DNA from: Isurus oxyrinchus
Lineage: Eukaryota
Reading direction: 5' to 3'
DNA: 64,000 nt
NCBI GenBank assembly: GCA_026770705.1
Contig: JANJGN010000024.1
Coordinates: forward strand, 62,001 to 126,000
Positions 21,332-64,000 of this stretch are shown in pieces. The position numbers and the translations under genes are program-made. Within the stretch, counting starts at the first letter, position 1, and every line of letters begins with the position of its first letter. The notes under the pieces were generated by a model. The model had not been told where the DNA came from and did no database searches. It was given only the letters and a program-made list of their open reading frames with translations.

Positions 21332-22699
21332 TATACAATATAAGTGGGAATTAAAACTCCATATTTAATAACACTAACGTTCATGTCCCAGATTTGTTAG
21401 TTAAGAGATTTATAGAACATTCAAAAAAAGGAGTGAATCATATAATTTAATACTTCTACATAAGAATTTGGAAGGGTCATTTCAAAACAAGCAAGGAATG
21501 CACTGTAACTTATTGATTTCTGATGAAAAAAAATCCCACAACAGCAGATTCAGAGATATAAACTTTAAGGATACCCAAACACCATTTTCAAGTACTGAGG
21601 CAAATAGGGAGCATTATTAGTCACATATTAAATTGCAAATAGTTTCCGAATACATGTTTTTCATCCAGAATTTTCTTAAAAGGTAAAACAGGGCTGTATT
21701 TGAAAACTTGTGGTATTGCACACAATAAAGTGCCCTTGGTTCCAAAGCATGGTGATGATAAACAGGACGCTCTAAAATAATGCCTAAAGTACATTCAGTT
21801 ACATTTGTAATTCTTTGCAATGAACGGTTTCTTGAAACCACTGAAAATTAACTCTGCAAAGATTGAAAAGGTCAGTAGTTTTGCTGTTGCATTTCTTCTG
21901 CTTGTTATGCTCAGAGCAACCATTCTATAATTTTCGGAAACGTGGTTTACTGCAAGCTTTGTAAGTGAGAAGCAGTGTGCAGTACAAGATTAGATTTGCC
22001 TTCAGCACAGTACCTTAGAAATCCACAGACCCCCAAGAGTGATCTATCCAGCTGCAGATCTTAGTAGTTTAAACATAACATAAACCTATCTTTCTTTTAA
22101 AATGTTCCTATGTATGTGAAGATGTTTACATCAGGGAAATGACTGGAGTGGGAGCAATGATCAGAGAAAGTGGTAGATTGTATCCATTGACATTGGATGT
22201 GCTAATTATTTTTCAGAATCAGATAAATGAATATGTGTGATATACAAATTAAGATGATCAGCTTCACTCCCAATGATTAAGGGTAGCCAATCCTATGTAT
22301 ATTAATATTTTTACATGATTATTGGTGTCTCTTATCACAACAATTTGCTGAACTGTTCCGTGAATAAAATTGTTTTGAAAGTAACCAACCAATAATTCTA
22401 AAGAAAGTCTCACAACTAAAGAGAAAAATAAAAAGAAAGACTTGCATCTATATCACGCTTTTCACAAGCACCAGACATCTCAAAGTGCTTTACAGCGAAT
22501 GAAGTACATTTTGAAGTGTAGTCACTGCTGTAGGAAACCAATTTGCCCACAGCAAACTCCCATAAACAGGAACATCGTAATGACCAGATAATTCATTTTA
22601 TGATAAAGGCAAAAAACTGTGGATGCTGGAAATCCAAAACAAAAACAAAAATACCTGGAAAAACTCAGCAGGTCTGCCAGCATCTGCGGAGAGGAACAC

Positions 22700-22738
22700 A
22701 GTTAACGTTTCGAGTCCGCATGACTCTTCAACAGAACT
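22700..22738 (-). ncRNA. Minimal type-I hammerhead-like motif (U6 core)
   Basis: AGUU-CUGUUGA-A-GAGUC-AUGCG-GACUC-GAAA-CG-UU^AACU. Confidence 0.65.
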
Positions 22739-23226
22739 AAGGAAAAATAGAAAAGGGGTGAAATATAAGCTGGTTTAAGGGGAGTGGAGGGGGGTGGGAC
22801 AAGAAGAGCTGGATAGGGGGCCAGTGATAGGTAGAGATAACCAAAAGATGTCACAGACAAAAGGACAAAGAGGTGTTGAAGGTGGTGATATTATCTAAAG
22901 GAATGTGCTAATTAAGGGTAGAAAGCAGGATGAGCAAGGTACAGATAGCCCTAATAGGGGTGGAGCCTTTTTCGATTCCTTCACCCCATCCCAACCCACC
23001 CCCACTAGGGCTATCTGTACCTTGCTTGTCCTGCTTTCTATCCTTAATTAGCACATGCCTTTAGATAATATCACCACCTTCAACATCTCTTTTGTCTGTG
23101 ACATCTTTTAGTTATCTCCACCTATCACTGGCCCCCTATCCAGCTCTTCTTGTCCCACCGCCACCCCCCCCACCCCCCACCACAACCAAAACCAGTTTAT
23201 ATTTCACCCCTTTTCTATTTTTCCTT

Positions 23227-23265
23227 AGTTCTGTTGAAGAGTCATGCGGACTCGAACTGTTAACT
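23227..23265 (+). ncRNA. Hammerhead-like motif, mutated copy (GAACUG for GAAACG)
   Basis: AGTTCTGTTGAAGAGTCATGCGGACTCGAACTGTTAACT. Confidence 0.5.
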
Positions 23266-24321
23266 GTGTTTCTCTCCGCAGATGCTGTCAGACCTGCTGA
23301 ATTCATTTTATGATGTTGATTGAGGGATAAATATTGGCTAGGACACTATGATGACTCCCATGCTCTTCTTTGAAATTGTGGTATGTAATCATATGTTATG
23401 TCACCTGAGAGCTAGACAAGCAGAGCCCCAGCTTAATAGCCCATACAAAAAATGGCACCTCCAACAGTGCAGCTTTCCCTTAGGCACTGCACTTGAGTGC
23501 CAGCCTAAGTTGTTGTGCTCAACTACCGGAGTTCAACCTTCTGGCCCAGAGGTGAGAGTGCTACCAACTGAGATACAGCTGACACTGAGGGAAGGAAATA
23601 ACAAAAATGAATCTTTTCATTATTAAATTTGAAAGATTCATACAGAGATAAAGTTCCATGAAAAAGAACTTTAAAAGGGATTCATATTAACAAAAGTTAA
23701 TGCGCACATTGTTTTGAAGTTCCATTTGACCCACTTGTAATATAGTTGGTTAATTCTTGATGATCTCAAAATAGCTGCAAAAAGACGGATATAAAGTATC
23801 ACAACAAGAACATTACAGAGCGTGCTGTTATCTTGTAGTGAAATAACTACTTTCATAGATTTTAACAGTCAGATATCAAAACATTGTATCAATGCTGTTT
23901 ACAGGGAATTTCATGCCATGCTAGTTCACCAGTTAGTGAAGTGACTGAGAATAATAGATCTGTAATAATATTCCTTTCACATATCCCAAGCAACTAAATG
24001 CTAAAAAGGTTCAACTGATGCAAAGTTTGTGAAACCAAATAAGCAAATTAGATTTTATGTTCCTGTATCGAGGCATCTTTAGTGTAGCCCATCTTCACTA
24101 ACTAAGCAAGAATTAAACTAGAACTGTTTAAACATGTGAACTGGTGTCTGCAGATCAACTCTTGGATAAAATTATTGGAGGCTGATCACCAGTTCAATTG
24201 ATAGGCAATATTTTGTATGTGAGTGAAAATATTGCTGGTTAACAGAGTAAAGCATATTTTTTCATTCATATAAAAAGGTAAATTATGTTGTAGATCTCAA
24301 GACAAGGTTGTAGGAAAGACT

Positions 24322-26200: not shown

Positions 26201-28065
26201 GTCACCATTTAACTAGTAACTTTTTACAACCTGCCAACCAGCTTGTTAATGAGGCATATGCAATGCAATGCAAGTTCTGGCAAAATGGAAAGTGATCATC
26301 ATTATCATTAACTGATGGATAAAGTGTGTTAAGGAGAAGAACTGGCTGTGGTGGGGTTGGTGCTGGGACTTGTGGTGGGGGGGGGCGGGGTGGATCTGTA
26401 GAGCTATTGCGACTATACAAATATTAGAGGCATTGCTTGCTTCTTTCAGGAAAAGGAACTTTTTTGCAAGTTAGGTTTTCTAATGTTAGTGATTAAACAC
26501 ATTTATGGCAAATTCTGCTCTGCCAGATCAACAGGCAATTTAACATGTTTACAATAAACAGGTTAATGTCCCTATTAAAGCAGAGAGAAATTTGGTGCTA
26601 ACACATTAAGCACTTTTTGTCTAATCTTGGATTGTGTACAATACTGACAAGACCCTATTTATGCAAATATTGACTAACTAGGGCCATTTCAGAATCAATG
26701 TAGACCAGAGTGTTGTGTGGATGAGACCAGTTAAGGGCAGCAGGTCCTGTGCCCTGAATGATATTAGCAAACCAGTTGTGTTATTATGACACAAAAATCA
26801 AAGCTTTCAAAGACATTTTTCTTGATGTTGACCAACTAATAACTAGATTTATTACACTAATTTCCACAATGTAGTGGGATTCAATCTCTTGACTTCTGGG
26901 TTGCTAGTCCAACGTCATATCACTATCCACCTCACAGGACAGTATCGTTATCTGCAATGTCTATTTTTCCATTGGAGTTCTTGAGGTGACTGTGTCCCTT
27001 TGAACCTAGTCCAAATGGTCATCCTTCTGGTGTGAGCCAGGATTGAGAGTGTTTACATATTATGATGCTATAGTATTGCTATATTACAACAGTGAGAGCA
27101 CTTCAAAAGTAAAATGTTTCATTAATCAGTAAGCCAGTATAATCCTATCCAGGGGTTACTGCACAATAACAAAAAAAGAAATTTGGTTGATCTTACCCCG
27201 ACCCAACCTTTTACCCCCTGCCTAGAAGGAAAAAAGCATTTGTAAAATATCAGCTGCTAAGTCAGGAGAGATCAGCTCCAAAAGGTAATCACAAATGGGC
27301 TCAGCACCACATTGCTTGGAGCACTTTCCTACCAAACTTTTTACAGCAGCTTTCATCTTTATTCTTGTTGAACAATCAGCAGCTGTGGACATGCAAAAAC
27401 AGGCAAAATCAAGGGAGAAGGTACCAATTCAGAAATAATTCAATTGTGTAGAATAATCAATGGTTGCTAAAATACAGCAGATTAATTATTTTTAATAAAA
27501 AATTCTTGCTGGCAGTTCAGCAGTATGTTATTAATAGAGTGGGCTCCATGCTAGACTGGTCTGATTTTAGGGAGGTATGGTACATGTTATCATTCTTTTG
27601 AGTGTTATAGTTACCCAGGAGTTAGAAGTGCTTTTAATCCTTCTAACTTTTCCTGGGTAACTATTATTGTAAGGCACTCTGAACCATCCAAAGTTTGCGA
27701 TTTAAATCGTACTTTCGGATAGTTCTGACCACAGGGCAATTGCCCAACGGAAGTTTGAATTTCCTGCGTAATTGCCCAGCAGTCCTTAGCTGGGGACTTC
27801 CAGGGTGGTGGTTGCCCAGTTACGACTCTTGGAAGCTCCTGAAGTTACGGGCCAAAGTAATCCCTACTTTTTTAAAGGCTGATGTTAGACATGAAGGTTG
27901 CAGACAGTGATATGCAGCTATTTTATATGTAGCCGCCTGCTTCCTATCAACTGCTGATGCTGTATCATTTTACCTTCTTTCCCCAGTCCTGCTCCATTTC
28001 TGTAACAAAAACAGAATTACCTGGAAAAACTCAGCAGGTCTGGCAGCATCGGCCGAGAAGAAAAG

Positions 28066-28104
28066 AATTGATGTTTCGAGTCCTCGTGACCCTTCGACAG
28101 AACT
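28066..28104 (-). ncRNA. Hammerhead-like motif, mutated copy
   Basis: Reverse complement AGTTCTGTCGAAGGGTCACGAGGACTCGAAACATCAATT. Confidence 0.5.
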
Positions 28105-28125
28105 AAGTAGAAATAGGAAAGGGGT

Positions 28126-28265
28126 NNNNNNNNNNNNNNNNNNNNNNNNNNNNNNNNNNNNNNNNNNNNNNNNNNNNNNNNNNNNNNNNNNNNNNNNNNN
28201 NNNNNNNNNNNNNNNNNNNNNNNNNNNNNNNNNNNNNNNNNNNNNNNNNNNNNNNNNNNNNNNNN
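28126..28265. other. Assembly gap (140 N)
   Basis: Run of N. Confidence 1.
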
Positions 28266-29075
28266 GGGGGCATGGATTGGGTTGGGGGAGAGAAGTGATG
28301 GGGGTTGGTGTGGTTGTAGGGACAAGCAAGCAGTGATAGAAGCAGATCATCAAAAGATGTCACAGACAACAGAACAAAAGAACACATAGGTGTTGAAGTT
28401 GGTGATATATATCTAAACGAATGTGCTAGTTAAGAATGGATGGTAGGGCACTCAAGGTAAAGCTTAGTGGGGGTGGGGGGAGCATAAAAGATTTAAAAAT
28501 ATTTAAAAATAATGGAACTAGGTGGGAAAAAGAAAAATCTATATAATTTATTGGAAAAAAAAAACAAAAGGAAGGGGGAAGAAACAGAAAGTGGGTGGGG
28601 ATGCATGGACTGGCGACGCATCTGTTCCGATGATGCTACCTTCAAAAACAGTTCCTTTGACATGTCCTCCTTCTTCCTTAACCGAGGTTTTCCACCCACG
28701 GTCGTTGACAGGGCCCTCAACCGTGTCCGGCCCATCTCCCGCGCATCCACCCTCACACCTTCTCCTCCCTCCCAGAAACATGAGGGTCCCCCTTGTCCTC
28801 ACTTATCACCTCACCATCCTCCGCATTCAAAGGATCATCCTCCGCCATTTCCACCAACTCCAGCATGATGCCACCACCAAACACATCTTCCCTTCACCCC
28901 CCTGTCGGCATTCTGTAGGGATCGTTCCCTCCGGGACACCCTGGTCCCCTCCTCCATCACCCCCTACTCCTCAACCCCCACCTATGGCATCACCACATGC
29001 CCACGCAAAAGATGTAACACCTGCCCCTTCACTTCCTCTCTGCTCATTGTCTAAGGGCCCAAACACTCCTTTCAA

Positions 29076-29405
29076 GTGAAGCAGCATTTCACTTGCATTT
29101 CCCCCAACTTAGTCTACTGCATTCGTTGCTCCCAATGCGGTCTCCTCTACATTGAAGAGACCAAACGTAAACTGGGCGACCGCTTTGCAGAACACCTGCG
29201 GTCTGTCCGCAAGAATGACCCAAACCTCCCTGTCGCTTACCATTTCAATACTCCACCCTGCTCTCTTGCCCACATGTCTGTCCTTGGCTTGCTGCATTGT
29301 TCCAGTGAAGCCCAACGCAAACTGGAGGAGCAACACCTCTTCTTCCGACTAGGCACTTTACAGCCTTCCGGACTGAATATTGAATTCAACAACTTTAGGT
29401 CCTGA
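29076..29405 (+). pseudogene. PLE GIY-YIG endonuclease domain
   Basis: FTCISPNLVYCIRCSQCGLLYIEETKRKLGDRFAEHLRSV..HFN..RKLEEQHLFFRLGTLQPSGLN (YIG changed to YIE). Confidence 0.9.
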
Positions 29406-29812
29406 ACTCCCTCCTCCATCCCCACCCCCTTTCTGTTTCTTCCCCCTTCCTTTTGTTTTTTTTTCCAATAAATTATATAGATTTTTCTTTTTCCCACCTA
29501 TTTCCATTATTTTTAAATATTTTAAAATCTTTTATGCTCCCCCCACCCCCACTAGAGCTGTACCTTGAGTGCCCTACCATCCATTCTTAATTAGCACATT
29601 CGTTTAGATAATATCACCAACTTCAACACCTATGTGTTCTTTTGTTCTGTTGTCTGTGACATCTTTTGATGATCTGCTTCTATCACTGCTTGCTTGTCCC
29701 TACAACCACCCCCCCTCCACTTCTCTCCCCCCACCCAACCCACCACCCCACCCCCCCCCCCACACACACACCTTAAACGAGCTTATATTTCACCCCTTTC
29801 CTATTTCTACTT

Positions 29813-29851
29813 AGTTCTGTCGAAGGGTCATGAGGACTCGAAACGTCAACT
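29813..29851 (+). ncRNA. Minimal type-I hammerhead-like motif (U6 core)
   Basis: AGUU-CUGUCGA-A-GGGUC-AUGAG-GACUC-GAAA-CG-UC^AACU; predicted cut after 29847. Confidence 0.7.
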
Positions 29852-31477
29852 CTTTTCTTCTCCGCCGATTCTGCCAGACCTGCTGAGTTTTTCCAGGTAA
29901 TTCTGTTTTTGTTTTGGATTTCCAGCATCCACAGTTTTTTGTTTTTATCTCCATTTCTGCAAGCCTCTCTGACAATTCACTTGTTCCTCGTTTATATTTG
30001 CTCTGCATTCTTGATTTATCTATGAATTGATATCTTTCCCCTTGATTCCGCTTGTCTGTACATAGCCACAAGTCAGGTCAGCATTTGTTTTGTGAGATAT
30101 AGGTTTATTTTGCCTCTTCATTTCGACTTCTTTATCTTTGAGCCCCCACACCCTCACACAGTCTGACCTAATGTTCAATTAAATGTGGTTGAAACCTGCT
30201 TTTATCAGCACAAATAATGTATGAAAGTACAAAGAAAATGGAAGTATGCATATTAAATTAATAATGCTTCTGTATTCAATCAATCACATGCTAAAATGTG
30301 CTGGTGACATTGAGAGAAATCTTTCTGCCTCCATTTTTAAACATGGTCCAGGACCATTTTAGGGACCAAACGCAATGGTTTCTGAAGTCCATCTGTTTGT
30401 GCAATCTTACTGAAGGAAGCCAATTAACTGGACCTCTCCAGAAGCCCCAGCTACTCAGGGATAGTAGACAGGCTGTGTAGGCAGGAGGACCAAACAGAGT
30501 ACCCGAAGCTGTGGGCAGCATGTAGCCCCACTGGAAGGGGTAGAAGCTGCTGAGTTAGGAGGGAACCCATGAGTGCATCTCAAGCAGGAGGTGCCTTCTG
30601 AAGACTTCAAACATCAGTATAAGTAAGTGTGATCACAATGCCAAGCCATCATCCCGGAGGGTGAACCCTTTCACAGAATGAGCTGTGGCCCCAGCTGTGG
30701 TTCCCTGGTGCCTATGGGTCTGGGGTGGGGGGTGGGGGGGAAATTAAAGGAATATGTATTGGAACCCCAGCTTGCCATGGGGTACCTCTGGTCACCTGTC
30801 CATCTTCGGCCTTAGCAAGGAGCTCGTTTGACATTGGGATGATCCTGGCAGTATCACCAATCTGCCCCTAAATGGCCAATTAATTGATGATAGTTAACTA
30901 CGTGCAGCTGCCAGGCAGGTAGCTGATGCTACTTTCATCCCACCTCATCAAGATCATTCAGAGGCAGGAATACACAAATTTCAAAATTTCCCCAGCCTCC
31001 TGCCTCCAAAGCTCCCTCCATGTGGCTGACCAGGTTCCACCTGAACTTACATGAAAATACACTTAATTAATTTTAAATGGAGCAAATATATTTTACTGTA
31101 CTTTTATTCAAATTGCAATTGTTAAAAATCATGACAACTCTCTTTGGCTATTGAAAGCTTGTTTTAATTTGTTATCTGCCCTTTCAGTGGATTAATCTTT
31201 TGTTCTCATCATGTGAAACTGGCAAGGATGCTTTATATGGGCATCTCTAGGTTATTCTGAGTAGGCAGTGGTGCTGTTGGGCCTTATACAAGCAATTGTT
31301 TGTGCACCTCAGAGGATATGAAGAATTAACCACACTATGCGGATTAAAGTCACATTTTAACCAAACCAGATCGAGCTGGCAGATTTCCTTCACTAAATGG
31401 CATTAGTTAAGCCAGTTCAAAAACAGAATTACCTGGAAAAACTCAGCAGGTCTGGCAGCATCGGCGGAGAAGAAAAG

Positions 31478-31516
31478 AGTTGACGTTTCGAGTCCTCATG
31501 ACCCTTCGACAGACCT
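31478..31516 (-). ncRNA. Hammerhead-like motif (U6 core)
   Basis: Reverse complement AGGTCTGTCGAAGGGTCATGAGGACTCGAAACGTCAACT. Confidence 0.6.
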
Positions 31517-32052
31517 TGAGTTCGAGTCCAAGAAAGAGTTGAAATATAAGCTGGTTTAAGGTGTGTTGGGGGGGGGGGGGGGGGGGGGGGGGGGTGGAGA
31601 GAGCGAGAGAGAGAGAGAATTGGAGGGGGGGGGTGTGGTTGTAGGGACAAACAAGCAGTGATAGAATCCCCACCCCCTTTCTGTTTCCCCCTTCCTTTTT
31701 TTTCCAATAAATTATATAGATTTTTCTTTTCCCACCTATTTCCATTATTTTTAAATATCTTAAAATCTTTTATGCTCTCCCCACCCCCACTAGAGCTATA
31801 CCTTGAGTGCCCTACCATCCATTCTTAATTAGCACATTCGTTTAGATAATATCACCAACTTTAACATCTATGTGTTCTTTTGTTCTATTGTTGTTGACAT
31901 CTTTTGATGATCTGCTTCTATCACTGCTTGCTTGTCCCTACAACCACACCCCCACCTCCACTTCTCTCTCTCTCTCTCTCCGCCCCCCCCCCCCCCCCCC
32001 ACACACACTTTAAACCAGCTTATATTTCAACTCTTTCTTGTACTCGAACTCA

Positions 32053-32091
32053 AGTTCTGTCGAAGGGTCATGAGGACTCGAAACGTCAATT
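32053..32091 (+). ncRNA. Hammerhead-like motif (U6 core)
   Basis: AGTTCTGTCGAAGGGTCATGAGGACTCGAAACGTCAATT. Confidence 0.65.
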
Positions 32092-33159
32092 CTTTTCTTC
32101 TCCGCTGATGCTGCCAGACCTGCTGAGTTTTTCCAGGTAATTCTGTTTTTGTTTTGGATTTCCAGCATCCGCAGTTTTTTTGTTTTTATCTCTTAGTTAA
32201 GCCAGTTGTTGCTTTATAGCAAGGTTCTGACTTCCATTGTCATTTTTCTTTTGGTGCTCCTCCACAAATATAAGATTTGAACTCAAAATCTCTGGGTTGT
32301 TAAGTCCAGCACCATGACACTCTCAATCTTCAATTATTCATTGACTAAAGTCTCATGTCAGGTTGTGGCATCTTTGGATAAGTAGGATGAATGGAATGTT
32401 TCAGTGTGAGAACATCTTGGGAGTAGTGATCATATATAATTAGGTTATGAACAAAGAAACATCAAATGTAAAAACATGCAACTGGAACAGAGCCAATGTC
32501 AGTGCTTTGAGTAAGGATCTAGCACAGGTAGACTGGAATAAATAAAATGGCCAGGGAAATAGTACATGAATAAGGCAGGCCTTTAAGGCAAAGATAATTC
32601 AGGTATGAATCTAGCATATTCCCAAAAGGGAAAAAGCTGTGGTATGCAAAACTCGAGTTCCCTGGATGACCAAGAAACTAGGGGCCAGAATAAAGCTGGA
32701 AAAAGAGGTTTATGACAAACACCAGGCACAGAATAATTAGGTAGCTGATTTAAACTCAGGCAGAACACAGGGAGAAGGGGTAATTGAAACAGGAAGGGCA
32801 AAGCGAGTATAAGCAAAGATTAGCAAATCTTGTGAAATGGAATCCAAAAATAGTTTATAAATACATAATAAGGATAGTTAAAGGAATGATGGGGCCAATT
32901 AAGGACAAGGAAGAAATCTTCTTGTGGAGACAGAGGACATGACTGAGGTATTGAATTATAAAAGAAGCAATACAGTTAAGATCAGAGTCGATGATGAGAA
33001 TAAATGTAAAATCTCTGAAACAATGAATGACTCAGTTGAACAGTTGTGTGCCATTGCATTTACAATGAACACTCAGTGCAGGCTTCAACTAGTGCATCAT
33101 TAAAAAAATTTTTAACTAACATCCTTTTTGCTGTTGATGCTCTAAGTATTTTCAAAGTA

Positions 33160-43014: not shown

Positions 43015-45871
43015 GGGCCAGAATTTTGACGTGGGCGTGTGGGGACAGGCCCAATACGCTGATGTGCAAAATGACGCCAGATGTCATCGGGCGTGCGTCC
43101 CCACATCATCGCGTGTCATTTAGATCTTTTGTTTGGCGAGCACGCACCGGAGGCAGCTGCACGCCCGCCGAACTGTCAAAGACCTATTAAGCCTATTAGG
43201 GAAGTCGTTTAGATAATTAACAGTGCTGCCCGGCAGATGAAGAGCCCAAGCGGCCTTCGCATTTTTCAGGAAGCTTCATCCATGGGCAGGATGAGATTTC
43301 CTGAAGGTTTTATTACATAAATAAAGCTTTTTTGCACAATTCATGAACATGCCCCAGCTCATATGACACTATCATATGAGGGGACATAGAGTCATAGAGG
43401 TCTACAGCACAGAAAAAGGCCCTTCGGCCCATCGAGTCTGTGCTGATCAAACAAGTGCCTAACTATTCTAATCCCATTTTCCAGCACTAGGCCTATAGGC
43501 TGTTATGCCATGGCATCACAAGTGCAATCCAAATACTTCATAAATGTTATGAGGGTTTCTGCCTCTACCACCCTTTCAGGCAGTGAGTTCCAGATTCCCA
43601 CCACCCTCTGGGTGAAAAAATTCTTCCTCACATCCCCTCTAAACCTCCTGCCCCTTACCTTAAATCTATGCCCCCTGGTACCAAGGGGAAAATTTCCTTC
43701 CTGTCTACCCTATCTATGCCCCTCATAATTTTATACACCTCAATCATGTACCCCCTCAATGTCCTCTGCTCCAGGAAAATAACCCCAGTCTATCCAATCT
43801 CTGCTCATAACTAAAACTCTCCAGCCCAGGCAACATCTTGGTAAATCTCCTCTGCACTCTCTCCAGTGCAATCACATCCATCCTATAATGCGGATTCCAA
43901 AACTGCATGCAATACTCTAGCTGTGGCCTAACCAGTGTTTTAAACAGTTCCAGCATAACCTCCCTGCTCTTATATTCTATGCCTCGGCTAATAAAGGCAA
44001 GTATCCCATATGCCTTCTTAACTACCTTATCTACCTGCCCCGCTACCTTAAGGGACCAGTGGACACGTACACCAATGTCCCCCTGATCCTCGGTACTTCC
44101 CAGGGTCCTACCATTCATCATGTATTCCTGTGACTTGTTTGTCCTGCCCAAGTGCATCACCTCACACTTACCTGGATTAAATTCCATTTGCCACTGATCA
44201 GCCCATCTGACCAGCCCATCTATGATCTCCTGTAATCTAAGACTATCCTCCTCACTATTTACCACCCCACCAATGTTCGTGTCATCCACAAACTTACTGA
44301 TCAACCCTCCTACATCCAAGTCTAAATCATTTATGTTTACCACAGACAGCAAGGGACCCAACACCGATCCCTGTGGAACCCCACTGGACACAGGCATCCA
44401 GTCACAAAAACATCCCTCCACTGTCACCCTCTGCTTCCTGCCACTCAGCCAATTCTGAATCCAATATGCCAAATTGCATTGGATCCCATGGGCTCTTACC
44501 TTCGTTACCAGTCTCCCATGTGGGACCTTATCAAAAGCTTTGCTGAAGTCCAAATAGACTACATAAAATGCATTGCCTTCATCTACACACCTGGTCACCT
44601 CTTCAAAAAATTCAATCAACTTGGTCAGACATGACCTCCCCTTAACAAAACAATGCTGACTGTCCTTAATTAATCCCTGCCTCTCCAATGTAGGTTAATT
44701 ATGTCCCTCAGAATTGCTTCCAATAGTTTCCCCACCATTGAGGTTAGACTGACTGGCTTGTAGTTCCTTGGTTTATCCCTTCTTCCCTTCTTGAATAACG
44801 GTACCACATTGGCTGTCCTCCAGTCCTCTGGCACCTCTCCTGTGATCAGAGAGGTATTGAAAATTATTGCCAGTGCCCCTCTATCTCCTCCTTTGCCTCA
44901 CTCAACAGCCGGGGATACATCTCATCCGGGCCTGCAGATTTTTCTATTTTTAAGCCTGCCAGACCACTTAGAACCTCCTCCATTTCTATGCTAATTTCTT
45001 TAATTATATCACAGTCCTTCTGCCTGATTTCCATACCCACGTCGTCCCTCTCACTTGTGAACACCGACACAAAGTATTCATTTAGAACCCTATCTACGTC
45101 TTCCGGCTCCACACAGAAATTACCACTACGGTCCTAAATGGGCCCAACCCTTTCCCTAGTTGTCCTCATAGTCTTAATGTACTAGTAAAATAGCTTTGGA
45201 TTTTCCTTTATTTTCACCTGCCAATGTTTTTCATGCTCCCTTTTTGCTCTTTCATGAATTATCCTCGTACTCTTAATGTACTTGTAATATAACTTTGGGT
45301 TTTCCTTTATTTTATCTGCCAATGTTTTTTCATGCTCCTTTTTTGCTCTCCTAATTTCTTTTTAAAGTTCCCCTCTACACATTCTATACTCCTCCAGGGT
45401 TTTGAGCCCTCGATACCTGCCATAAGCCTCCCTTTTTCTCTTTATCCAATCCTGTATATCCTTCGACATCCAGGGTTCCCTGGATTTGTTGGTCCTACCC
45501 TTTATCTTTAGGAATACATTGGCCCTGTACTCTCCCTATTTCCTTCTTGAATGAGTCCCACTGCTCTGACGCAGACATGTCTAAATAAATTTAAACTTTA
45601 TTATTTATGAACTTTTATCATGTACTTAATCTCCCTGAGGCAGCACCATGCCTCAGAGAGATTTCTGCACTCTTAGATGAGCATGCACGAAATAGTACAG
45701 GCCATGACTCTCCCTTGTCCCTCGGCTGGCTCAGGTAGCACTGAGTGCTATGGAATGCGTTTTACAGTAAGGCCTACTGATGTAAAATGGCGGCACACAG
45801 CTGATCGCGGGCGGTGTTCAGCTCCGCGCCCACTCCTGACCAGCCCACCCGACATGCAGAAAATTCTTCCC
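43015..45871 (-). mobile_element. Harbinger MITE family A (copy 5), split by a CR1 insertion
   Basis: 43015-43387 and 45574-45871 rejoin at GACAT into the reverse complement of family A. Confidence 0.8.
43388..45573 (-). mobile_element. Relatively young CR1 LINE (RT domain and 3' UTR)
   Basis: 310-aa ORF 43756-44688: SCLTKLIEFFE, YLDFSKAFDKVPH, GVPQGSVLGP, KFVDDT; (CTCTATGA)n tail; possible GACAT TSD. Confidence 0.93.
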
Positions 45872-48504: not shown

Positions 48505-48788
48505 GTCTTTTGATTATCTGCTCGTATCACTGCTTGCTTGTTCTTACAACCACACCACCCCCAACTTCTCTCCCCCCACCCAACCCCCCTCCACCCCCCC
48601 TCCCCCACCTTAAACCAGCTTATATTTCACCCCTCTCAGATTCACTCAGTTCTGTTGAAGGGTCATGAGGACTCGAAACGTCAACTCTTTTCTTCTCCGC
48701 CGATGCTGCCAGACCTGCTGAGTTTTTCCAGGTAATTCTGTTTTTGTTTTGGATTTCCAGCATCCGCAGTTTTTTTATTTTTATCTCT
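48505..48788 (+). mobile_element. Solo PLE 3' end
   Basis: Homologous to 29660-29948; no inverted arm or TSD seen. Confidence 0.85.
48648..48686 (+). ncRNA. Hammerhead-like motif (U6 core)
   Basis: AGTTCTGTTGAAGGGTCATGAGGACTCGAAACGTCAACT. Confidence 0.68.
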
Positions 48789-57840: not shown

Positions 57841-59520
57841 CCCAAAGCGGTCACTCAGTCTGCATTTGGTCTCTCCAATGTAGAGGAAACCGCATTGGGA
57901 ACAACGAATACAGTAGACTAAGTTGAGGGAAGTGCAAGTGAAATACTGCCTCACTTGAAATGAGTGTTTGGGCCCTTGGATGGTGAGGAGAGGGGAAGTA
58001 AAGGGGCAGGTGTTGCACCTTCTGCGGTTGCATGGGAAGGTGCCCATGGGAGGGGGTTCAGGTGTAGGAGGTGTTGGAGGAGTAAACCAGGGTGTCCTGG
58101 AGGTAACGATCCCTGCGGAATGCCATCGGGGTGGCCGGGAGGGTGGGGGGGGGGGTGGTGGCGGGGGGGTGGCGTGGAGGATGAAGGGAAAATGTGTTTG
58201 GTGGTGGCATCATGCTGGAGTTGGCGGAAATGGCGGAGGATGATCCTTTGAATGCGGAGGCTGGTGGGGTGATAAGTGAGGACAAGGGGGACCCTATCAT
58301 GTTTCTGGGAGGGAGGAGAAGGCGTGAGGGCGGATGCGCGGGAGATGGGCCGGACACAGTTGAGGGCCCTGTCAACGACCATGGGTGGAAAACCTTGATT
58401 AAGGAAGAAGGAGGACATGTCAGAGGAACTGTTTTTGAAAGTGGCATCATCGGAACAGATGCGACGAAGGCGAAGGAACTGGGAGAATGGGATGGAGTCC
58501 TTACAGGAAGCAGGGTGTGAGGAGCTGTAGTCGAGGTAGCTGTGGGAGTCGGTGGGTTTGTAATGGATATTGGTGGACAGTCTATCACCAGAAATTGAGA
58601 CAGAGAGGTCAAGGAAGGGAAGGGAAGTGTCAGAGATGGACCATTTAAAATGATGGAGGAGTGGAATTTGGAAGCAAAATTAATAAATTTTTCCAGGTCC
58701 CAACGAGAGCATGAAGCAGCACCGAAGTAATCATTGATGTACCGGAGAAAGAGTTGTGGGAGGGGGCCGGAGTAGGACTGGAACAAGGAATGTTCCACAT
58801 ACCCCATAAAGAGACAGGCATAGCTGGGGCCCATGCGGGTGCCCATAGCCACACCTTTTATTTGGAGGAAATGAGAGGAGTTGAAGGAGAAATTGTTCAG
58901 TGTGAGAACAAGTTCAGCCAAATGGAGGAGAGTAGTGGTGGATGGGGATTGTTCGGGCCTCTGTTCAAGGAAGAAACTAAGGGCCCTCAGACCATCCTGG
59001 TGGGGGATGGAGGTATAGGGGGATTGGACATCCATGGTGAAGAGGAGGCGGTTGGGGCCAGGGAACTGGAAATTGTTCATATGATGTAGGGTGTCAGAGG
59101 AATCATGGATGTAGGTGGGAAGGAACTGGACAAGGGGAGAGAGAATGGAGTCAAGATAGCAAGAACAGGCTGACACGATCGGTCTGCCGGGACAGTTCTG
59201 TTTGTGGATTTTGGGTAGGAGGTAGAAGCGGGCCGTCCGAGGTTGGGAGACTATCAGATTGGAAGCTGTGGAAGAAAGGTCTCCAGAGGAGATGAGGTCA
59301 GTAACAATCCTGGAAACAATGGCTTGATGTTCAGTGGTGGGGTCATGATCCAGGGAGAGGTAGGAGGAAGTGTCTGCGAGTTGACACTCAGCATCTGCGA
59401 AGTAGAGGTCAGTGCGCCAGACAACAACAGCAGCACCCTTGTCAGCAGGTTTGATGACAATGTCAGGGTTGGATCTGAGAGAACGGAGTGCAGTAAGTTC
59501 AAAGAAAGACAGGTTAGAGA
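57841..59520 (-). mobile_element. Penelope-like element RT and GIY-YIG (frameshifted, no 3' pLTR)
   Basis: NPDIVIKPADKG, FYLLPKIHK..PGRPIVS, LFTMDVQSPYTSIPH, QIKGVAMGTRMGPSYA, LRYIND; then LVYCIRCSQCGFLYIGETK. Confidence 0.93.
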
Positions 59521-59524
59521 TAAA

Positions 59525-59782
59525 TGGGAACACCACATTTGGTGGAAGTTTCCCTACAAGCCACACGTCACTCTGGCTTGGAAATAAATTGCCATCCCTT
59601 CACTGTCACTGGATCAAAATCCTGGAACTCCCTCCCTAACAGCACTGTGGGTGTACCTACACCATATGGACTGCAGCGGTTCAAGCAGGCAGCTCACCAC
59701 CACCTTCTCAAGGGTAATTAGGGATGGGCAATAAATGCTGGCCCAGCCAGTGAAGCCCACACCCTGTGAATGAATAAAAAAA
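59525..59782 (+). mobile_element. APE-LINE 3' end with A-tail
   Basis: SKSWNSLPNSTVGVPTPYGLQRFKQAAHHHLLKGN*; GAATGAATAAAAAAAA. Confidence 0.85.
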
Positions 59783-61700: not shown

Positions 61701-62435
61701 AGGACCTTTTCCCTGTGTTTTGTGCAGCCTTCAGACTAAATTGATGGTCAGGTTTCACACGCAATGGACACATTACTGATGCCTGCAGCTCAATGGTGCT
61801 TGTCATTGCTGCAAGAATGTTGTGGGCAGGCATCATTAAGTTCTGTCATTCTCTCTGTGTGCTCTCAGCACCTCTGAGGTAGGATTAGTACCCCGTGGCC
61901 CCCCCACCCCCATCATCACTTCAGCATCTGTGACCAGTGATGCTGTGCTCCTGAAGGGGTCAGGTACTGAAGGCTGACAAAGGATCAAATGCATTTACAG
62001 TTTCACAGCTAGTACCGACCTGCGACAGCTTGCTGTGGCTCTTCAGCAGCATGTTCAGGTTCCCTAGCCGCTCCTCTTCCTAAGAGTGCTGTTCCTCCAA
62101 CTGCCCAGCTAGATCCTCCGTTGCTCTCTTCTCTTTCGTCTTCACTCTCTCTAAGCCATGAGTCATACAACTAGATCGCCAGGCTCCATGCCCCTGATGT
62201 GCTCCTGCAGGATGAAAGAGAGATGTGTGGGCTAATTGGATGTACTAAGAATCTCTCTTTAGTTATGTCTGAAGGCCCCTGAATGCATCCCAGAGAGTGC
62301 TGGTCACCACTTGGATGGCCAGAGTTTAGTGCACTACATAAAAACAAAAAAACTGCAGATGCTGGAAATCCAAAACAAAAACAGAATTACCTGGAAAAAC
62401 TCAGCAGGTCCGGCAGCATCGGCGGAGAAGAAAAG

Positions 62436-62474
62436 AGTTGACGTTTCGAGTCCTCATGACCCTTTGACAGAACT
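62436..62474 (-). ncRNA. Hammerhead-like motif with G8A change
   Basis: Reverse complement AGTTCTGTCAAAGGGTCATGAGGACTCGAAACGTCAACT. Confidence 0.5.
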
Positions 62475-62790
62475 TGAGTTCGAGTCCAAGAAAGAGTTGA
62501 AATATAAGCTGGTTTAAGGTGTGTGTGTTGGGGGGCGGAGAGATAGAGAGAGAGAGAGGTGGGGGGGGGGAGGTGGGGGGGTGTGGTTCTGTGGACAAAC
62601 AAGCAGTGATAGAAGCAGATCATCAAAAGATGTCAAAGACAATGGTACAATAGAACACATAGGTGTTAAAGTTAAAGTTGGTGATATTATTCTTTAACTT
62701 TAACACCTATGTGTTCTATTGTACCATTGTCATTGACATCTTTTGATGATCTGCTTCTATCACTGCTTGTTTGTCCATACAACCACACCC

Positions 62791-62821
<31 letters not shown>

Positions 62822-62896
62822 ATCTCTATCTCTCCGCCCCCCACACACACACCTTAAACCAGCTTATATTTCAACTCTTTCTTGGACTCGAACTCA

Positions 62897-62935
62897 AGTT
62901 CTGTCGAAGGGTCATGAAGACTCGAAACGTCAACT
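62897..62935 (+). ncRNA. Hammerhead-like motif (U6 core)
   Basis: AGTTCTGTCGAAGGGTCATGAAGACTCGAAACGTCAACT. Confidence 0.68.
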
Positions 62936-64000
62936 CTTTTCTTCTCCGCCAATGCTGCCAGACCTGCTGAGTTTTTCCAGGTAATTCTGTTTTTGTTTTA
63001 GTGCACTACGTGGCTGCTCAAGGCCCCACCCAACTCTGCCTTACTCCCCCTGACCAACTGGCGGCAGCTTCATTCACTTTACTGCAGGCTGTGCCCTCAG
63101 CTCAGGCGCAGACATTCTCCTAACCCACACTGTTAGCTGGAACCACGGGGGAGACTGGTCCAAACTGGAATGATGACATCGCAAAGGGCTGTGAGCACCT
63201 CCAACAGTCACTGCTCTGTGGCAGCTTTCAGAAGGAGATTGTACAACGCGCCCACTTATGCAATTGTTCTGCAGTCTACTAAAATTCTCATTAGCTTGCA
63301 GTCTGTGCTCAAGAGGTGAAAAGCTCTGGAGCATTTGGTGGCTCTTTCATGCCTCTGCGTTGCTTGAGTGAGCACATAAGCTAGAGGCCTGACTCCAAGC
63401 ATGTCAATGCGGCTGCGTCTGAACTGTCTCAGCTGCAGAGGAATAGTCACTTTATAAAAGGTTTCATTAATGCGTGGCCACTCTCCTGCCCCCCCCCGCC
63501 CCCACCCCCTCCCAACTCCGCACGTGCTTATGCACCAACATCAACTGCAGTGCAGACCTCCTGACCCAAACAGATTCCATGGATTTCACAAAACCCCACC
63601 CAGACATTTTTCACATTGTGAGCCAACCAATCTCACTGAAACATTGCCTTCTCATGAGGGTTTCCAATCTCCACTTTTGAAGATCTCATCTTGGAATTCT
63701 TTCCAAAAGTCGCTCCCACTCAGACGCCTTCAGCAATGGCCCTCCTCATAGGGTTTCAATCTCGCCTTCCAAAATTCCTTTCTCCTGGATCTCTGAGTAC
63801 ACTCAAGCTATACCTTCCAAGCCCAGTTTCAGACCTTCGCCATGCCAAGCAGAGCGCCACTTCTCCAAGTGGTACCTTTGACCCAATGGCCCGCAGCATG
63901 AAGTCACCAACCTTCGGCTGCCTCCTCGGATCTTCAGGGCTTCTCTCGTGCCCACTTCACTCAAAGTCTCTCCCTGCAGCCCTTTCTTAAAGTTGGAGCC

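Follow-up and report, generated by a model that had tools for sequence, protein, structure and literature searches.

A hammerhead-like motif with uridine at core position 6 in a very abundant family of shark Penelope-like elements

We analyzed a 64,000-nucleotide stretch of Isurus oxyrinchus DNA (assembly GCA_026770705.1, contig JANJGN010000024.1, positions 62,001 to 126,000), referred to below as the window. It contains truncated copies of a Penelope-like element (PLE), nine of which carry a 39-nt motif resembling the minimal hammerhead ribozymes of other PLEs. At core position 6, where the hammerhead consensus has A, the motif has T (U in the RNA). An initial annotation, made from the letters of the window, had placed nine such motifs here and read all of them as U6. 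A pattern search and a gap-free alignment recovered each motif at its assigned position, with U6 in 9 of 9 copies.

Penelope-like element copies in the window

By self-BLAST and alignment, the motif-bearing repeats are 5'-truncated elements, eight of them arranged head to head in four pairs and the ninth solitary. The copy used as reference (28603-29951, + strand) comprises the end of the open reading frame (ORF), the part of the 3' untranslated region (UTR) or pseudo-long terminal repeat (pLTR) that holds the motif, and a long-form 3' end. At 28603 it is joined head to head to a shorter, inverted, 5'-truncated partner (28004-28603, - strand) with a short-form 3' end. The left arm of this pair also contains an assembly gap of 140 N (28126-28265); inverted repeats of PLEs are known to trouble assembly, as at this gap. 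Two further pairs lie at 31418-32192 (31418-31666 on the - strand with the short end, 31666-32192 on the + strand with the long end) and at 62338-62999 (62338-62690, -, long end; 62696-62999, +, short end). The fourth pair, at 22602-23303, represents a diverged subfamily (arms at 22602-22963, -, and 22995-23303, +). The solo 5'-truncated copy occupies 48506-48787 (+).

These copies end in two alternative ways. One 3' end is ~35 nt longer than that of its partner in three of the four inverted pairs, while in the pair at 22602-23303 the shorter copy ends even earlier than the short form. On the reference copy, the short-form end maps to 29911-29915 (+), which is where the copies with motifs at 28066 (-), 31478 (-), and 62897 (+) terminate, and the long-form end maps to 29948-29950 (+), 35 nt further on. 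Both stand out genome-wide as loose ends in the contigs of three sequencing runs (behind 29913-29915 and behind 29948-29950, respectively). The additional stretch corresponds to the PLE "tail", a segment of 30-40 bp present at one end only of PLE insertions (PMC8557442) and traced to two adjacent internal start sites of the reverse transcriptase (RT) (PMC11167929). Both papers also report truncated PLE copies in inverted or tandem order.

Coding remnants were assigned with the help of a related element on metagenome contig MDSQ01024577.1 (locus L010), which has an intact 814-aa ORF with RT and GIY-YIG endonuclease (EN) domains. The reference copy retains the C-terminal, EN-encoding part of its ORF at 29055-29405 (+, stop codon 29403-05). 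Its frame (29055-29402) shows the GIY and YIG motifs with cysteines between them (CCHH), and a C-x4-C-x2-C linker precedes it closely in the same frame, ahead of an in-frame stop. This fragment scored E=0.049 against Pfam GIY-YIG (below the cut-off), 0.96 against the Atlas GIY-YIG clusters, and 29% identity (E=1e-13) against the EN end of the L010 ORF. A decayed copy of the same family (57843-59566, -), 82% identical to 28614-29187, contributes an RT ORF (58058-59566) followed by the first part of EN, within which the copy ends, so that it lacks the motif. Its RT matched RVT_1 (E=4.9e-4), eukaryotic RT/DUF8422/HTH_animal clusters of Atlas (0.95), and the L010 ORF (35% identity over 330 aa, E=1e-51). 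All PLE ORFs of the window are decayed by frameshifts and stop codons, and family-scan scores on them were weak. Judged by these protein matches, the truncated pairs, and the tail, the repeats are PLE copies, and their identification in the initial annotation as 3' parts of PLEs was borne out. A CX2-5CxxC linker is typical of Neptune/Nematis-type PLEs and absent from Penelope/Poseidon (PMC8557442). The EN linker of the shark family thus appears to be of the Neptune/Nematis type, a clade reading taken from the linker motif alone.

The window also contains a 310-aa ORF (43756-44688, -; RVT_1, E=7.8e-23) from a different retroelement with no sign of kinship to the PLE family.

Anatomy of the motif

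A loose pattern search of the window returned 14 matches where 2.5 were expected, a number that none of 100 shuffles reached, and nine of the 14 are the 39-nt motifs. The reference motif (29813-29851, +) begins 408 nt past the ORF stop codon. In 5' to 3' order, it consists of the first strand of helix I (4 nt, 29813-16), the core box CUGUYGA (C3 to A9, 29817-23, with U6 at 29820 and N7 at 29821), an unpaired extra A (29824), a 5-bp helix II (29825-29/29835-39) with a 5-nt loop (29830-34), GAA (G12 to A14, 29840-42), the palindrome ACGU (29843-46), H17 (C or U, 29847), and the second strand of helix I (29848-51). Helix I is a 4-bp AGUU/AACU pairing. By analogy with the hammerhead consensus, cleavage would occur after C17 of the GUC triplet, between 29847 and 29848 (+). 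This predicted site sits 64-68 nt before the short 3' end and 101-103 nt before the long one. The earlier placement of the motif at PLE 3' ends therefore needs qualification: it does lie in the 3' UTR/pLTR, but upstream of the two actual ends by these distances.

Among the nine copies, six of the seven letters of the 5' core box (C3-U4-G5-A6-N7-G8-A9) fit the consensus and position 6 fails. The extra A after A9, the G10.1-C11.1 pair, and G12-A13-A14 each occur in 9/9 copies. Helix II is paired in 100% of cells of the nine-copy alignment, as GGGUC/GACUC in seven copies and GAGUC/GACUC in two, a one-sided change from G.U to A-U. The 3' box (GAA, ACGU, and C or U at H17) is present in seven of the nine, and the palindrome is likewise intact in 7/9.

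Departures from the motif are single decay events. Point mutants among the copies had been implied at the outset, and six copies indeed carry listed changes. The decayed motif at 28066-28104 (-) has ACAT for ACGT, loop ACGAG, and AATT in helix I, such that A15.1/U16.1 are kept and G16.2 is lost. Single changes affect the 3' strand of helix I (AATT) at 32053-32091 (+), its 5' strand (AGGT) at 31478-31516 (-), the core at 62436-62474 (-; G8>A, CpG decay), and the loop (G>A) at 62897-62935 (+). The copy at 23227-23265 (+) has changes at A15.1 and C15.2 (GAAC-TG for GAAA-CG). It belongs to the same diverged subfamily as the motif at 22700-22738 (-), which has U7, helix II GAGUC/GACUC, loop AUGCG, U at H17, and a fifth helix I pair (U.G). 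The motif in the solo element (48648-48686, +) also has U7 (CUGUUGA). Because all nine copies come from one repeat family, they are a single evolutionary observation and not independent ones. A descriptor scan of both strands of the window for a canonical-core hammerhead elsewhere recovered only the U6 copies.

The proposal that these motifs have the architecture of PLE minimal type-I hammerheads agrees with every published hallmark except A6. Minimal hammerheads of metazoan PLEs have a helix I of 4-5 bp, an unpaired nucleotide separating position 9 from 10.1, a conserved G10.1-C11.1 pair, and a palindromic 15.2-16.2 or loop 3, and their motifs often come in pairs 100-700 bp apart on opposite strands (PMC4209133). 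With this group (Cervera & de la Pena 2014, PMC4209133) the shark motif shares its pLTR/3' UTR location, the 4-bp helix I, the unpaired nucleotide between A9 and G10.1, the G10.1-C11.1 pair, GAA followed by an ACGU palindrome in place of helix III (which implies a dimer), the GUC triplet, and the inverted motif pairs. It differs in having U (C in 3-4% of depth) at a position that is invariably A in the published group. In its text, that study names a U3-A8 covariation as the sole exception in the core, and its descriptors would have missed a U6 family because the catalytic boxes were fixed. Our literature search for A6U hammerheads returned nothing relevant, although figures or supplements of PLE hammerhead papers could still show a U6 variant. 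Taken together, the motif is a member by descent of the PLE minimal hammerhead group that fails one defining core feature, with catalysis a prediction from its anatomy.

In first-order random sequence, a relaxed minimal hammerhead descriptor in which position 6 was left free had 0.089 matches per Mb of strand. For a 550-nt 3' UTR this amounts to a probability of ~5e-5, and a chance resemblance at this place in a PLE is therefore very unlikely. The Rfam hammerhead models, suggested earlier as a check, did not detect the motif: there was no match at the gathering score in the whole window and none at E<=10 in 29700-29960. We read this null as saying little, because a model that requires helix III to be paired should fail on such a motif.

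Several other features surround or overlap the motif. Every copy has a C-rich and CA-rich low-complexity tract of variable length 40-110 nt upstream (29700-29775 in the reference); AC-rich or C-rich tracts beside hammerheads have been described for other PLEs. The reading frame that begins with an ATG in loop II (29830-32) is just 18 codons long, with its stop at 29884-86, and an invariant CCAG|GTAAT at 29893-29901 resembles a splice donor. Introns are known from PLE pLTRs, and the ORF of the Anolis element starts at stem II. The reference copy is marked by a private T at 29870, a position with G in 96-97% of family depth.

Position 6 across the family and in related elements

The state of position 6 beyond the window was assessed in public sequencing runs, mostly Logan contigs, aligned to 29774-29960 at a likeness of at least 80%, with variants listed from 3% of word depth. 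Contig pieces covering the motif region numbered 78,307 and 66,087 in two organisms. The copy number of the PLE family is very high in both, and the family is among the most abundant repeats found there. A raw whole-genome sequencing run of a third organism gave only 2 reads, and the family is absent there. The sole listed variant at position 6 (29820) was T>C, at 3.3% and 3.8% of depth in the two organisms, with A below the 3% limit. U6 is thus the family consensus, extending the claim made for the nine copies, and it follows that the master elements transposed with a U6 core, as had been proposed. A family consensus with A6, named at the outset as grounds for refuting that proposal, is thus not what these contigs show.

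The remainder of the motif varies little. At position 7 (29821), C occurs alongside U (40-44%) and G (5%). Apart from positions 6 and 7, the motif has only CpG transitions among its listed variants; they affect C11.1/G12 and the palindrome's CG at the usual 9-12% per side and reflect ordinary decay after insertion. No non-CpG variants of at least 3% occur at the other ten core letters or in either helix. Counted in this way, 2 of 39 positions are variable in the motif (6 and 7) compared to 17 of 64 in the adjoining tail (Fisher p=0.008).

Comparison of subfamilies gave a similar picture. The region from the motif to the 3' end (the last ~140 nt) is ~90% identical between subfamilies, and the sequence upstream is ~72-74% identical. 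Despite this ~26% upstream difference, core letters have changed only at positions 6 and 7, and the subfamily differences fall at permitted places (N7, G.U to A-U in helix II, loop II, and C to U at H17). Depth is about ten-fold higher in the motif than just upstream of helix I; since the subfamilies differ upstream of helix I, the block that they have in common begins at the motif. The contig profile showed no step-up in depth after 29848, and inserts that start at the predicted cut are therefore not a large class.

One run recorded as a coral metatranscriptome (RNA; run X20) contained 40% of the sampled words of 29055-30100. This signal could reflect host or environmental carry-over, or transcription of the family somewhere. 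A second run (X15) was only guessed to be RNA and has no bearing on expression.

To place the U6 core among other elements, metagenome contigs were scanned with a pattern of helix II and the core letters beside it, which imposed nothing at positions 6 and 7 or at the extra nucleotide and did not include helix I. Of the ten loci found, seven resemble hammerheads and share helix II and the GAAAC box with the shark motif; each of these has A6 (core CUGAAGA in six, CUGAUGA in one). The other three (L003, L005, and L009), with CUGGAGA on long contigs, are probable chance matches in unrelated DNA and were set aside. The hammerhead of L010 lies ~830 nt downstream of its intact ORF. It resembles the shark motif in the extra A, in a helix II like that of the shark GAGUC subfamily, and in the GAAACGUC 3' box; it differs in its CUGAAGA core (A6), a longer, interrupted helix I, and a 4-nt loop II. 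Five other loci (L001, L002, L004, L007, and L008) form a second minimal hammerhead family with a CUGAAGA core, a GAAA loop, the ACGU palindrome, and a 5-bp helix I. On L007, RT-like ORFs (RVT_1, E=4.8e-5) precede the motif on its strand. These five hammerheads probably belong to a PLE of a eukaryote in the samples.

Covariation, raised earlier as a check of the helices, was found between but not within families. Inside the shark family there are no two-sided changes, only G.U/A-U and G-C/G.U exchanges. Once the other PLE hammerheads are included, helix I covaries: across the shark, L010, and L001/7/8 lineages, both sides have changed at four of five pairs, and 92.9% of cells are paired, compared to 81% in shuffles (0 of 500) and 15-37% with the partner strand slid. 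As helix I was outside the search pattern, this support is independent of the search. It is modest, coming from three lineages only, and favors both homology and the pairing of helix I.

Folding calculations gave no thermodynamic support for the hammerhead fold, as expected of minimal hammerheads. The monomer hammerhead fold was calculated at -5.9 kcal/mol, above a minimum of -7.3 kcal/mol, and the motif region folds no better than shuffles (z=+0.97). A dimer with an intermolecular 4-bp ACGU helix is computable at -13.7 kcal/mol, also above the cofold minimum of -18.2 kcal/mol. The same calculations suggested a competing structure (29817-29848), as U4-G5-N6-C7-G8 can pair with C15.2-G16.2-U16.1-C17-A1.1 at every place but position 6. 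With A or G there, a 5-bp rod helix of -11.3 or -10.7 kcal/mol, respectively, would be completed, ~5 kcal/mol more stable than the hammerhead fold (-5.9 kcal/mol). U and C, the only letters observed in the family, would avoid it (-7.3 and -6.8 kcal/mol). Being a nearest-neighbor calculation, rod-helix avoidance is a lead and not evidence.

One subfamily has, in the ~30 nt preceding helix I, a partial duplicate of the 3' half of the motif (GGACTCGAAC); before this comes a repeat of the stretch located after the predicted cut (TCAACTCTTTCTT). This arrangement was found at 32026-32056, 31513-31543 (-), 62870-62900, and 62471-62501 (-). The upstream GACUC of this duplicate could pair with the GGGUC strand of helix II in an alternative hairpin. 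Template switching, or a tandem arrangement that has since been lost, may have left this duplicate behind.

Interpretation and comparison with known systems

Our preferred explanation, to which we assign a probability of roughly 0.55, is that the motif is a hammerhead-derived and probably very slow module of the pLTR, and that insertion does not depend on it. In the nine copies and in most of the family, the sequence continues unbroken across the predicted cut as far as an end 64-103 nt downstream. Their template RNAs were therefore uncut there when downstream reverse transcription began. Combined with the very high copy number, this read-through indicates that insertion does not require cleavage, and the element can probably spread without strong self-cutting.

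The mechanism that we envisage starts from a hammerhead module in the pLTR of a very abundant PLE family. Under the standard model, two copies on one transcript would pair through ACGU to form helix III, and the RNA would be cut after C17 (29847|29848). With a pyrimidine (U, rarely C) in place of the A of the CUGA turn, self-cleavage should be very slow or absent. Uridine turns follow a UNR rule, which a pyrimidine at position 6 violates. Published mutagenesis points in the same direction: apart from a C3/G8 swap, all single and double mutants of the CUGA turn had low activity, with no rescue by second mutations (PMC9901934), and a rate of <0.1 per min was measured for the A6C hammerhead that occurs naturally in phage Bcep176 (PMC3088659). 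Even as dimers, PLE minimal hammerheads with a canonical core are slow in vitro (PMC4209133). In the Anolis Poseidon element (PAc), mutants with a dead hammerhead still insert normally in vitro, its hammerhead cleaves only with protein, and RNA-seq shows no ends at the site (PMC11167929); Naiad PLEs, too, do well with no hammerhead (PMC8557442). Reverse transcription started downstream of the site on uncut RNA. A slow ribozyme would be harmless under these circumstances and may even help, because cutting in the 3' pLTR would leave the coding RNA without its RT entry site. The remaining letters of the motif appear to be held constant in the master copies, and the motif would probably still act as folded RNA, either for residual protein-assisted cleavage or as a protein-binding fold. 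The low variability of these letters argues against a wholly functionless relic.

Several points weigh against this explanation. The lower variability of the motif comes from a single contig table, which is weighted by depth and lists variants from 3% upward. The motif may also be conserved as part of a larger functional tail and not for itself, because the whole of the last ~140 nt is ~90% conserved between subfamilies. Conversely, real constraint on the rest of the core would be odd for a dead ribozyme. Finally, the expected effect of A6U is extrapolated from type III and minimal constructs to a dimeric, protein-assisted PLE context.

A second possibility is that U6/C6 is a functional core variant which gives useful cleavage in a dimeric and/or protein-assisted context, with the core, pyrimidine included, kept by selection on the master copies. 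The restriction of non-CpG motif variants (at least 3%) to positions 6 and 7, compared to 17 of 64 positions in the adjoining tail, would fit such selection, as would the confinement of subfamily differences to permitted places. There are also precedents. The PAc hammerhead is assisted by protein (PMC11167929), and some rare natural core variants retain some activity (PMC3088659). Every systematic study, however, found low activity for changes at A6 (PMC9901934, PMC3088659), and frequent insertion of a 3' cleavage product should have produced the depth step after 29848 that the contig profile lacks. The departure from the UNR rule also counts against it. On balance, we consider a functional variant unlikely, if still deserving of attention. 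In its most specific form, a working pyrimidine-6 ribozyme in a dimeric, protein-assisted setting would have been selected in the masters, perhaps since A or G would misfold into the rod. The letters seen at position 6 are those that avoid this helix, but only by nearest-neighbor calculation, and this version is somewhat less probable again.

A third possibility is that A6U killed the ribozyme in an ancestor of the family and left the motif with no role, so that its apparent conservation would reflect only the youth of the family and hitch-hiking with a functional tail (RT entry site, promoter). Most variation is CpG decay (~9-12% per site, including C11.1/G12 and the palindrome), which indicates no selection after insertion, and the ~90% identity between subfamilies (compared to ~72-74% upstream) extends over the whole region from the motif to the 3' end. 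Two-sided covariation is also lacking within the family. Moreover, PLEs can do without this ribozyme: hammerhead-dead mutants of PAc insert normally in vitro (PMC11167929), and Naiad PLEs thrive without hammerheads (PMC8557442). In opposition, the motif has fewer subfamily-level variants than even the adjoining tail (p=0.008), and its core letters other than 6 and 7 are unchanged between subfamilies that differ by ~26% upstream. A dead relic is thus doubtful, and we rate it below a functional variant.

Lastly, a conserved hairpin of other purpose that resembles a hammerhead by coincidence would suit the lack of an Rfam match even at E<=10, the monomer fold that is not the minimum (z=+0.97), and the ~0.09 chance matches per Mb of relaxed descriptors, but is highly improbable given the ~5e-5 chance within a 550-nt UTR, the presence of all PLE minimal hammerhead hallmarks outside the descriptor (PMC4209133), the near-identical motif with a canonical core in the related intact PLE on L010, and the covariation of helix I across these elements.

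The preferred explanation, a slow module dispensable for insertion, has consequences beyond this family. Hammerheads are near-universal in canonical PLEs, yet they are slow in vitro, dispensable for insertion in the only reconstituted system, and missing from the very successful Naiads. The U6 family is a natural experiment on their role, as a core letter that is highly sensitive to mutation has been changed in essentially all copies of an abundant PLE. Should U6 prove inactive, robust self-cleavage would not be required for large-scale amplification of a PLE, and the remaining conservation would point to another role of the fold. Should U6 prove active, the hammerhead consensus would be too narrow at A6, and surveys that fixed CUGANGA would have missed whole families. 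If the pyrimidine-6 ribozyme were real, it would constitute a natural functional variant of the uridine turn in which a core letter is set by the avoidance of misfolding.

Besides the minimal hammerheads of metazoan PLEs and the L010 element, three known systems offer close comparisons. Like the shark family, PAc of Anolis carolinensis (PMC11167929) is an EN-containing PLE with a hammerhead in its pLTR, two adjacent RT starts that give rise to the tail, and insertion from uncleaved RNA. In contrast to the shark motif, its core is canonical (C3 and G8 mutants were assayed) and its hammerhead overlaps the start of the ORF. PAc also belongs to the Penelope/Poseidon clade, which lacks the CX2-5CxxC linker present in the shark element. 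The Bcep176 hammerhead (Perreault et al. 2011, PMC3088659) shares the natural change of A6 to a pyrimidine. It is a single phage locus with a measured low rate, whereas the shark change, known from sequence, has become fixed in a vertebrate retroelement family with a very high copy number. Finally, the Naiad and Chlamys PLEs (PMC8557442) are, like the shark family, highly successful without a canonical hammerhead. They have no recognizable hammerhead fold and an N-terminal EN, whereas the shark element has a C-terminal EN and keeps both the fold and 10 of the 11 core letters.

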